From Tetramitus jugosus (Eukaryota; Protista; Heterolobosea): a stretch of DNA of 64,000 bases. The stretch lies in the NCBI GenBank assembly GCA_937625935.1, contig OW569385.1:62001-126000 (forward strand), written 5' to 3'. Both the position numbers and the translations under genes were made by a program. Shown here in pieces: positions 48,515-62,785 of this stretch; the first letter of the stretch is position 1; the number at the start of each line of letters is the position of its first letter. Below the pieces are notes generated by a model, which saw nothing but the letters and a program-made list of their open reading frames with translations, searched no databases and was not told the origin of the DNA.

Positions 48515-48610
48515 CTCCCATACCGGGACTCGAACCCGGGTCTTCCGGGGACTTTTGCATTTCGCTTGGAAGTGAAAGCCGGATATCCTAACCAGCTAGA
48601 CTATATGGGA
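48515..48610 (-). tRNA. tRNA-Glu(TTC) with a 23-nt intron at 37/38 (48550-48572)
   Basis: TCCCATA/TATGGGA acceptor; TCCGG-CT-TTC-A[intron]C-CCGGA; removing the intron leaves 73 nt. Confidence 0.92.
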
Positions 48611-59392: not shown

Positions 59393-60796
59393 ATGAATCA
59401 TAGCTCCAACTACAATAGTTTGATGTCTCGAAACAACACCACTGGTGGTGCACAAAGTGGAAACACAAGTTGTCTTCTGCCATCCGATGCAACAACGAGT
59501 TCAACAACCACTCATCATCACCCATATTCGAGACGAGAAAAGAAATTGAGTGAATTGAAAGCAGAGCACGAAAAAGTTCTTCGCCAACATCATCAGATCC
59601 GAATGGGAGTTAATGACCGCTCATCTACGGCTCATTCACACAAACAGCAACACCAGAACTCTCATCGCTCACACCAGCAACCAAAATTTATTAACAACTT
59701 TTTTGACCAAGATCATACGAACTCTTCATCCACAATGGTCAGTGGAAATAGATCGATATCTAGGAATCTTATCGATCCTTCAAGTGCATCCATCACAAAT
59801 GATCAGGCTAGGAGTAATGTTTCATATGGAGGTGCCAGTACACACTCACCACATCTGAAAGCTCAAATGACGAGCAAGAGTAAGAGTAAAACGAATTTGA
59901 TTGAACAACGAGCCCGAGATTTAATGGCACAGATTGAGCAAAAAGTACGAAGAGATCTCAATATTCCTCAACTGTCACCAGATAAACCTTTGCCAGCCAA
60001 AGGGTCGCAGTATCATGCTTCTCCAATTGATTCTGATACAATGGAGGAACTCAATGAAAAGCAGTCAATAGACTTAAACAACCTTGAAGAGAAGGAACGA
60101 GAATTGCAACAAGAGTTGTTACAGATTGATCACTTACTGTTGACTAGTCGAAGAACTCCGCAGCAAAGAGAACAAAATCTATCCATATCGAATCAATCCG
60201 AACCTTCTCGAACTCAGAAGCAACCTGAGCGTGATGTTACAGAAAATAATCGGAGTAGACCTCATAAAACAGAGTCACTACATAGTGTCACCTCCAATCG
60301 ATTGGAACAATCTCGAATACGGAAAAGAGATACCTCAACAAAGCGCTCTCTTCAGCAAGCAACACACCATGACCAAAAATCCTTAATTTCAAATACCACA
60401 AATCAGAGACCATTGTCTGCTCAAAGGAGGAGAGTGCAGCTATCTTCATCAGTCATTATGAATCGAGCGACTTCTGTCAACAGACCAAGGTCATCTAGCG
60501 CTAGTAAAGTGAGAGACTCCAGTGACAACTGGTACTTTGTCAATAATAGAGCTGAGAAGACGATGACCATAGAGGTAAACAAAGCCATAGACAAGTTACA
60601 ACGCCAACTCCAACCCAAATTACTTCACAACAAAGGTGATACGCCCAAAACAGAAAAACCAATCGTTAAATCAGTATCGGTTCAATTGAAAAACCTTCTC
60701 ATCCAAGATGAAGAATTGAAGAGAGTGAGAAGAGAAATAGAGGCCCTAACTAATGGCTCAACCAGAGTCAGTGAAAATTCTTACTTTTTTCAATAA
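59393..60796 (+). CDS. Low-complexity coiled-coil hypothetical protein
   Basis: 467-aa ORF with short coiled coils and RPxSA motifs. Confidence 0.65.
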   Translation: MNHSSNYNSLMSRNNTTGGAQSGNTSCLLPSDATTSSTTTHHHPYSRREKKLSELKAEHEKVLRQHHQIRMGVNDRSSTAHSHKQQHQNSHRSHQQPKFINNFFDQDHTNSSSTMVSGNRSISRNLIDPSSASITNDQARSNVSYGGASTHSPHLKAQMTSKSKSKTNLIEQRARDLMAQIEQKVRRDLNIPQLSPDKPLPAKGSQYHASPIDSDTMEELNEKQSIDLNNLEEKERELQQELLQIDHLLLTSRRTPQQREQNLSISNQSEPSRTQKQPERDVTENNRSRPHKTESLHSVTSNRLEQSRIRKRDTSTKRSLQQATHHDQKSLISNTTNQRPLSAQRRRVQLSSSVIMNRATSVNRPRSSSASKVRDSSDNWYFVNNRAEKTMTIEVNKAIDKLQRQLQPKLLHNKGDTPKTEKPIVKSVSVQLKNLLIQDEELKRVRREIEALTNGSTRVSENSYFFQ

Positions 60797-60836
60797 ATGG
60801 ATTCAGCCAAGAAAACAGAGTCAAAATTCACCAAAA

Positions 60837-62289
60837 TGCATTGACCGGGAATCGAACCCGGGTCCTCAGCTTGGAAGGCTGAGATGCTCCCGAATAAAAC
60901 GTGGGAACCTGACTATGAGAGATCAGGTCATGAGTCAGGTGCTGCCTAATTCGACACAAAAGTCGGGAATTGACTCGAAAATAACTGCTGCCGACTCCGG
61001 TGTTAACTCCATCAGAAAGTTGGGAATACCACTCAGGTACTGACTCACACGAAGTACACCACTGAACCATGAGTTAAGTGAAAAAACAGCAAGTCAACTG
61101 AGTCGATATTTTAGCCCGATCTCTCTCTCAACTGCTAATCACAACCAACCGCTTTGAATTTGTCGAAGTCGGTTTGTTTCCAACAAACCGAACACAACTA
61201 ACCCAAACGCAACTGCTTCAAGCAACAAAAAGTTTTTAAGTTGGGATACAAACTCCCTTATTGATCTCAAAACGTGTGATCACAACGGCTAAAGAAACAT
61301 TTACCAAGAAGCATATTGTTACTCCTGCGGCTCCATCCACTGAGCAAGTTCTGACACAAGGAACAGGTGTTGAACAAACAGATCAAGAAAGAGTTGAGAC
61401 TGAATACTGGTAAGTTTGTTCTTTTTATTTATGTTTCGATCACTTGTGATTTTCTGAATTTTCACTTCAAAGGAGTTAGGAGTGACTTACTTGCTGGAGA
61501 ATGATGAAGCAATGCCTGCTTTGAAATTTGGGGACAGGATGTTGAATAGTGCCAAAACAGAAATGCTCAATGAATTAGGTCAGTATCATTTTTCTATGCT
61601 GTTAATTGTTGATGTCATTTACCCTCCTTTTTCACAGTGCAGAGATGTCATCGAACAACAAAGAAAACTGTACATGGTATGTCGAACTGCAGTTTGTGTT
61701 TGTACCTGCTACTTACAACTTCTTTCCTACATCTTGTGTTTGTTTGTTGCGGAATTGTTGCTTTGGTGGTATGAACTTAAGCTCTTTTGATCGCTCTCGC
61801 ACCTTGCTCAAAATCGTCGGAGAAATAATGATCAACCACCTGACGAGGAGTCTCCTTGATCAAACTTGCGGAGATAAAGTACAAAGATCAGTGATTACCC
61901 ACTTGCCATGATGAGAGTTTTCTTGGGAATCTGTCCGGTTGATTTTGATTCACGAAAAATATTCATAATAAAAGTTTTCTTCATTCTCTCTCTACAAGAT
62001 TACAAGAATTTTTTGGTCCCTCACTCGCCCTGTTTCTCCTTGTTAGCCGCCTGATGTTGACTTGGGTCATGAGTTTGCACAGGACACAATACCTGACTTG
62101 AGCAAGTCGGCACCTGAAAATGAATGGCAACTTGGACCACTGCAGATGGTTGGTTTGTACCTGACTCCAGTGCTGACTCTGGGATAGTCAGCACCGGACT
62201 TGATCCGAGTCAGGATCTGGCGCAACGAAAGTCAGGTGCTGGTTGCCTCATGTGATTTTTTATTCGGGCTGCCTCTACACCATCAATGC
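60837..62289 (-). pseudogene. tRNA-Gly(TCC) interrupted in the D-loop by a 1380-bp insertion
   Basis: 5' piece GCATTGATGGTGTAGAGGC (62289-62271) plus 3' piece AGCATCTCAGCCTTCCAAGCTGAGGACCCGGGTTCGATTCCCGGTCAATGCA (60888-60837) rebuild a canonical 71-nt cloverleaf. Confidence 0.93.
60889..62268. mobile_element. Non-autonomous TIR DNA transposon, CMC/CACTA-like
   Basis: Termini CCCGAATAAAA...TTTTATTCGGG, CT duplicated on both flanks (60887-60888, 62269-62270), and subterminal ACCTGACT/AGTCAGGT repeats at both ends. No transposase recognised. Confidence 0.88.
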
Positions 62290-62785
62290 TCCTTTGCTTT
62301 CTGTAAATCGGCAGTTGACGGTTTCGTATTTCTCCACTTTTCGTGTCGAAAAGTGATAGGTACCGGATGAGCGAGGATCTCGCAAAGGACCTTGGTAGTG
62401 AAGATTTGGGTTTTTCACGTGCGTGCATCCCAGTGCAGATCCAGCTTCACCACTTCAAAGAGGAGACAAACGGCAGTCAGTCAGGACATCTATTACTGTG
62501 AACACCCAGTCTATGACCGTTTCTTTCCATCTCTTCGTATCACTCTCTGTTCCTTTGAAAGCCAACACTATCACACCAGCTTGGTTGTTCACTGCAATCG
62601 TAGCATGAGAATTCAAAAAATTCTTTGACTATGAATTTCACTACGAAGCTGCCAGTTACCACATGATTTCAATCTGGAATAACCGAGATCAGCAGACATG
62701 TTCACGAGAAAAGTTGTGTGTTTGATTTCAAGCTCAAGACTTTAATAAAACGGAGAAAGGTGAGTAGAAGTCTATAAAACGAGAC

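Follow-up and report, generated by a model that had tools for sequence, protein, structure and literature searches.

A non-autonomous TIR transposon with four copies in Tetramitus jugosus, all within the D-loops of tRNA genes

Target-specific DNA transposons are rare in eukaryotes, and the literature consulted names Dada, Pokey, and some CryptonV families. Dada elements are DNA transposons that reside inside multicopy tRNA genes, many of them at the A box. They have no TIRs, are flanked by 6–7-bp TSDs located at nt 8–13 or near the anticodon, encode a C/DxxH transposase of the MuDR/hAT/P/Kolobok type, and mostly use one or a few tRNA types chosen by sequence (PMC3706591, PMC8869645). Pokey resembles the element described here in being a TIR DNA transposon with a preference for a multicopy RNA gene (cited in PMC3706591), but it belongs to the piggyBac superfamily, targets 28S rDNA, and also inserts elsewhere. 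The retroelements Ty3, Ty1, TRE5, TRE3, and DGLT-A offer a likeness of another kind, a position-defined choice of sites near any tRNA gene in compact genomes (PMC5006619, PMC5911963); they insert up- or downstream and spare the gene, whereas the present DNA transposon breaks it. Most members of the CMC/EnSpm superfamily have 5'-CA..TG-3' termini (PMC12730594). Pack-CACTA elements, described in plants, are non-autonomous and carry CACTA-type ends around captured host DNA (PMC6379663), a criterion that the present element meets; to our knowledge, tRNA targeting by Pack-CACTA elements is not known.

The element at the split tRNA-Gly(TCC) gene

We analyzed a 64,000-nucleotide stretch of T. jugosus DNA (the window), in which a tRNA-Gly(TCC) gene is interrupted by a 1,380-bp element with CCC..GGG termini. 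The insertion is bounded by perfect 11-bp TIRs, CCCGAATAAAA and its exact inverse, and the CT flanks, which read AG on the tRNA strand, are duplicated. Excising the element together with one CT restores a 71-nt tRNA-Gly(TCC) recognized by ARAGORN, which is 100% identical to eight intact paralogs in this genome; a ninth tRNA-Gly(TCC) paralog differs from the rejoined gene in the acceptor stem. The subterminal repeats, TCAG[G/C], occupy 12 sites in the terminal 430 bp compared with a single site in the 950-bp interior. A first-pass annotation, made from the sequence alone, had described the split 71-nt gene with its stems, the 11-bp TIRs, the 2-bp CT/AG duplication, and subterminal repeats, all of which held, and had left to be checked whether other intact tRNA-Gly(TCC) genes exist, which they do. 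The 1,380-bp element showed no similarity to a transposase and is hence non-autonomous; a Pfam search with two of its open frames likewise returned no match. These data show that the element is a non-autonomous, Pack-like TIR DNA transposon with 2-bp TSDs. All features are listed in Table 1.

Table 1. Coordinates of the element, its target gene, and related features (positions within the window unless a contig is named)
Feature	Coordinates	Strand	Remark
tRNA-Gly(TCC) 3' part, nt 20–71	60837..60888	-	One TSD copy included; identical to intact paralogs
2-bp TSD, left copy	60887..60888		CT; AG on tRNA strand, about nt 20–22
Non-autonomous CMC/EnSpm-type TIR element	60889..62268	+	1,380 bp; one of 4 copies
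Left 11-bp TIR	60889..60899	+	First 21 nt 20/21 identical to left end of L041 transposase-coding element
Left subterminal TCAG[G/C] repeats	60908..61040		Spacing 35/47, versus 36/48 in L041
Spliced polyadenylated transcript	61235..61992	+	RNA run X4
Exons (about)	61235-61409, 61473-61578, 61638-61676, 61782-61992	+	X4
GT..AG introns	61410-61472, 61579-61637, 61677-61781	+	X4
Captured 44-bp host coding piece	61633..61676	+	89% identical to host gene at C39
Captured 76-bp host piece	61726..61801	+	81% identical to DNA ~130 bp upstream of CDC48/p97 gene
Right subterminal TCAG[G/C] repeats	62050..62240		Both orientations
Right 11-bp TIR	62258..62268	-	
2-bp TSD, right copy	62269..62270		
tRNA-Gly(TCC) 5' part, nt 1–21	62269..62289	-	Acceptor 5' strand, D-stem, A box
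Accessory-gene relic	C45:398013-398659		
Accessory-gene relic	C35:267900-270208		
Accessory-gene relic	C33:139942-140925		
Accessory-gene relic	C31:406782-407135		

Two other readings of the locus can be dismissed. An intron or a split tRNA is ruled out by the TIRs and TSD, by the different tRNAs affected, by the occurrence of both orientations, and by the abundant intact paralogs (see below), and an assembly artifact is ruled out by PacBio-derived contigs that span the right junction. Elsewhere in the window, at 48515-48610 on the minus strand, ARAGORN called a tRNA-Glu(TTC) with a 23-nt intron.

The allele state was inferred from the PacBio-derived contigs of run X1. The filled right junction lies in a single unbroken contig with a depth of 22. 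A second contig, with a depth of 20, has a 59-bp deletion in the same flank, and its short side aligns over 27 letters only, where an empty tRNA predicts exactly 27 and a filled one 30. The Gly insertion appears heterozygous; the evidence is indirect and is not proof, as no single record spans the whole locus. Apparent heterozygosity fits a recent event, and the recent insertion suggested in the first-pass annotation thus has indirect support from a putative empty allele, short of proof. Fragments matching the element with few mismatches also turned up in a soil metagenome and in a run labeled as another organism, with no flanks visible in either.

Sequencing run X4 behaves as RNA, with three GT..AG introns, a poly(A) tail after position 61992, and alleles from several copies of the element. 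The transcript follows the + strand of the element, starts at ~61235, and measures ~531 nt when spliced. X4 contig depths over the element range from ~300 to 2,300 per contig versus 8–62 for neighboring contigs; such depths gauge expression only poorly. The longest ATG-initiated ORF in the spliced RNA encodes 53 amino acids, frameshifting indels distinguish the copies of the element, and the spliced RNA folds no better than shuffled sequences (z +0.9). The transcript is apparently non-coding. One exon derives from a host gene on contig C39: it is a captured 44-bp stretch of coding sequence, and by eye, without an HMM, we take the gene product to be a PB1...UBA (p62-like) protein. Only the Gly and Tyr copies contain the 76-bp fragment captured upstream of CDC48. 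These two fragments are the only traced cargo; the rest of the interior has no traced source, and the interior is not shared with L041, the transposase-coding relative described below. The interior is Pack-CACTA-like cargo, and we saw no sign that it serves as a guide.

Two features of the X4 data are recorded here separately. In the flanking gene (60500-60807 of the window), X4 and the DNA run X1 differ at ~5 sites, so X4 may represent the other haplotype or another culture. X4 record 16, over 61909-62600, is an RNA contig that carries alleles of the Met copy in the right part of the element and then continues into the Gly-locus flank; an assembly-graph chimera formed via the shared end and gene conversion are both possible.

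Four copies in four tRNA genes

A search of the genome (26.35 Mb in 56 contigs) identified four full copies of the element, on contigs C42 (1,380 bp), C28 (1,375 bp), C39 (1,299 bp), and C17 (1,315 bp). The Gly and Tyr copies diverge by 0.65%, and the others by 5–6%. The 11-bp TIRs and 2-bp TSDs are present in all four, and each copy occupies the D-loop of a different multicopy tRNA. The TSD is AG in tRNA-Gly(TCC), ending at about nt 21 (8 exact intact paralogs); AG in tRNA-Tyr(GTA), ending at nt 22 (12 paralogs); TG in tRNA-Met(CAT), ending at nt 18 (8 paralogs); and TA in tRNA-Ala(TGC), ending at nt 21 (14 paralogs). The counts for Tyr, Met, and Ala are based on zero-mismatch matches to 40-nt rejoined junctions. 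All of the rejoined genes are valid tRNAs, and a D-loop GG is common to all targets. The TSDs end 29–35 nt ahead of G53 of the B box, which places the insertions at the 3' edge of the Pol III A box, two sharing the orientation of the tRNA and two opposed to it. With the first copy granted and 300–2,500 tRNA genes assumed, three further insertions would fall in a 6-nt window by chance with a probability of 3e-13 to 2e-10.

In this genome, a B-box-plus-TIR pattern retrieved only the four copies and no more tRNA-inserted relatives, and a left-end pattern retrieved the same four. The JGI metagenomes contained neither a left-end match nor a transposase relative. No insertion in an anticodon or T loop was found among the known sites. 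These results show a D-loop position, on the 3' border of the A box, for each of the four copies. The first-pass annotation had proposed from its single copy that the element targets tRNA genes, an idea that copies at random non-tRNA sites would have refuted. It withstood this test, and targeting proved wider than the tRNA-Gly site, with four tRNA types in this genome. The suggestion that multicopy tRNA genes serve as a safe harbor is plausible, with 8–17 intact paralogs per target, and is still an inference.

We also noted a tRNA-Tyr copy at G000:C28:224959-224998, 2.6 kb from the split Tyr gene, which diverges directly after the anticodon and may be intron-bearing or truncated. Contigs G000:C54 and C56 have tRNA matches at identical coordinates and with identical scores and are likely a duplicated organellar contig.

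Relatives within and outside tRNA genes

A Transposase_21 search led to a 4.7-kb, two-gene CMC family (L026, L028, and L032) whose copies are 97–98% alike. This family has the same left TIR as the tRNA-inserted element and 2-bp TSDs, and its insertions lie outside tRNA genes in three of three cases. Beyond the TIR, the two show no similarity (left-end P 0.16 and 0.43). We therefore rejected the 4.7-kb family as the direct parent, on the grounds of its non-tRNA sites and the lack of similarity past the TIR; cross-mobilization is not excluded. No insertion in a tRNA gene occurs in further families, small or decayed, that begin with this 11-bp TIR (L021, L033, L034, L020, and L035, the last two being decayed relatives of the 4.7-kb family), and among the related transposase loci L040, L042, and L044-L053, those with visible (CCCG) ends are not in tRNAs. 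Possession of this TIR does not by itself confer targeting, given that sister elements sharing it insert elsewhere, and because the same-TIR 4.7-kb CMC family inserts outside tRNAs, targeting is lineage-specific. It marks one sub-lineage, recognizable by an extended left end.

The sister family has peculiarities of its own. Its insertions (L028:201-4880, L026:201-4878, and L032 on the minus strand) all three lie ~11–25 bp past a run of 7–18 T, and the family may have its own target preference. The other flanks of L028 and L032 are related (67% over 900 bp), possibly as parts of the same retroelement family. L032 also carries an extra ~570 bp just inside the left TIR that is absent from L026 and L028 and looks like captured host coding DNA.

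A closer relative was found in L041, a contig of assembly GCA_037189345.1 that carries a homolog of the sister family's transposase. The thiolase of its host is only 79% identical to the thiolase of the present genome, which marks that host as a related but separate species. The left end of the L041 element is identical to that of the T. jugosus element at 20 of 21 nt, and the similarity extends past the TIR (P ~0.001), with TCAGG at like spacing. The element starts directly after 22 nt that are the exact 5' end of tRNA-Val(AAC), a stretch with 17 copies in the T. jugosus genome. Only this junction is visible; the TSD, probably TA, is presumed, because the contig stops inside the element before the right TIR.

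L041 encodes an uninterrupted CMC/EnSpm DDE transposase and a second protein. The transposase, P0002, has 685 amino acids, is 48% identical to the sister-family transposase, and groups with the sister transposases with full support in a tree. It displays the CMC signature (D234, D321, C340/C343, H561/H565, and E585; motifs per PMC12730594), and its Pfam matches to Transposase_21, DUF1258, and DUF4218 are all below the curated cut-offs. The second protein has 412 amino acids and is about 21–26% identical to the accessory protein of the sister family. The model of its C-terminal domain has a pLDDT of 89, and the top five structural matches are all BEN domains; the match is moderate (best Z 7.5, Foldseek E 0.07), and the model of the whole protein is poor (pLDDT 49). 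This domain is thus predicted, with a likelihood that rests on a model and a moderate match, to adopt a BEN fold. A perfect B-box-like word lies at L041:651-665 (minus strand), ~55 nt into the left end of this tRNA-Val-inserted element, and may be due to chance because it is absent from the T. jugosus copies.

An autonomous DDE-coding copy with the same ends, which the first-pass annotation had put forward as a check, was not found intact in the T. jugosus assembly, where no intact partner with the 21-nt end was detected; a near-identical left end occurs in L041, at a D-loop site. Decayed accessory genes in T. jugosus (Table 1) are closer to that of L041 (29–45%) than the sister family's is (21–26%).

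The annotation's guess of CMC affinity is supported by this transposase-coding element. In common with CMC/EnSpm elements of the animal/protist type (Transposase_21, DUF1258), the present element has short TIRs, a 2-bp TSD, and subterminal repeats in two orientations, and L041 adds two genes, one for a DDE transposase that displays C(2)C and H(3)H motifs (PMC12730594) and one whose product has a fold of the DNA-binding type. It differs in its CCC..GGG termini, which do not meet the usual CA..TG; we regard them as a clade variant because bona fide Transposase_21-coding elements of the clade have the same ends. It also encodes no DDE transposase itself, whereas L041, which shares its left end, does. 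A further difference is its confinement to tRNA D-loops: we found no report of tRNA-gene targeting by CMC/EnSpm in the literature searched, which left out most subscription journals and Repbase Reports. By its ends, TSD, repeats, and linked transposase, the element is very likely a CMC/EnSpm member, with CCC rather than CAC termini and with tRNA-gene targeting.

The likeness to Dada lies in insertion into multicopy small RNA genes, seen at five of five present sites. Unlike Dada, the present family uses sites at nt 17–22 rather than nt 8–13, comprises five tRNA types at five sites in both orientations, and is linked to a transposase that matches CMC profiles and motifs (no direct comparison with a Dada profile was made). 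The perfect TIRs and 2-bp TSDs rule out a Dada identity, and the contrast drawn in the first-pass annotation, that Dada lacks TIRs, held (PMC3706591).

Explanations for target choice

We consider it very likely that the element is a CMC/EnSpm member mobilized in trans by an L041-like two-gene autonomous element and that targeting is active; this is strongly inferred, without transposition data. With less assurance, we lean toward a target read by position rather than by sequence, through docking of the transpososome on the Pol III promoter complex, an inference for which there are no TFIIIC interaction data. In this model, the DDE transposase and the BEN-fold accessory protein of an L041-like element would act in trans on the non-autonomous copies, the BEN-fold protein binding the subterminal repeats. 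Accessory proteins bind subterminal repeats in CACTA elements. The transpososome would then dock on TFIIIC, or on the polymerase on the gene, and insertion would strike the exposed DNA immediately beyond the A box, ~30 bp ahead of the B box. The price would be a single one of 8–17 identical tRNA copies per event, which makes the site cheap in a gene-dense genome. Our reason for favoring tethering is that the position hardly changes (TSD ends at nt 21, 22, 18, 21, and 22), whereas sequence (TSDs AG, AG, TG, TA, and probably TA), tRNA type, and orientation all differ among sites, a pattern typical of factor-tethered retroelements. Ty3 and TRE5 are known to use tethering to Pol III factors (PMC5006619). 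The evidence for position over sequence is limited to five known sites, the fifth (L041) with one junction, and a loose sequence readout is not excluded because all targets share the D-loop GG.

Direct DNA readout, in which the BEN-fold protein or the transposase would bind a degenerate A-box/D-arm and cut a few bases away in a Dada-like manner, remains possible. BEN domains bind DNA, and the matched structures are DNA complexes; TCAG, the core of the subterminal repeat, occurs in the D-stem of three of the five targets, and Dada is thought to read primary sequence (PMC8869645). However, TCAG is absent from the Gly and Met targets, the site shifts by 4 nt, the TSDs differ, and an 11-bp degenerate box without a B box would be expected widely outside tRNA genes. 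Scored with a profile of the subterminal repeats, the target A boxes did not stand out from random 26-mers (fractions 0.05–0.31), so that mimicry of the target A boxes by the subterminal motif is not supported. Another explanation is a transposase that needs no tether and prefers a DNA state (bent, nucleosome-free, or prone to hairpins) formed at the D-arm when a tRNA gene is active. It would account for insertions that fall within the loop of an inverted repeat, in either orientation and with varying sequence. It likewise remains possible, slightly less so than direct readout; against it, ~50% identical transposases whose elements have the same TIR insert at other sites here and in other genomes, and no anticodon or T loop was seen to be hit.

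Guidance by the spliced RNA of the element or by tRNA fragments is suggested by a well-represented spliced RNA without a conserved ORF. It appears very improbable: the longest word shared by element and target is 9 nt, RNA folding is at the level of shuffles, the interior is host-derived and not common to L041, and we detected no nuclease-guide domain. A scenario of random insertion, with every harmful copy lost afterwards, draws on the gene-dense genome, in which selection purges many insertions, but it is all but excluded. Sister elements persist at non-tRNA sites, selection cannot restrict four sites to a 5-nt window of the tRNA, and a second species uses the same site. Docking on the Pol III complex thus remains our preferred explanation. 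For a bolder version of it, that the transposase system finds any tRNA gene by such docking and integrates no more than a few bases from where the A box ends, we find the case evenly balanced.

What is new here are the D-loop copies, four of four with exact empty paralogs, together with an autonomous relative in a second species, non-targeting controls, an RNA, and captured host fragments. Genes interrupted in this manner can pass for intron-split tRNAs and so bear on tRNA annotation. L041 and its non-targeting sisters have the TIR in common and ~50% transposase identity, with an accessory protein only about 21–26% identical; such a shared TIR and transposase with a divergent accessory protein makes the gain of a safe harbor directly testable by domain swaps. 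Under the bolder reading, L041 would be the uninterrupted two-gene version of the system and the non-targeting sisters its natural controls. The targeting logic apparently differs from that of Dada, in that any tRNA type is used at a fixed position and in either orientation. If confirmed, targeting by this family would mean that target specificity arose independently in a superfamily unrelated to those named above; with docking on the Pol III complex, it would be the equivalent, among DNA transposons, of Ty3/TRE targeting, conserved among heterolobosean species.
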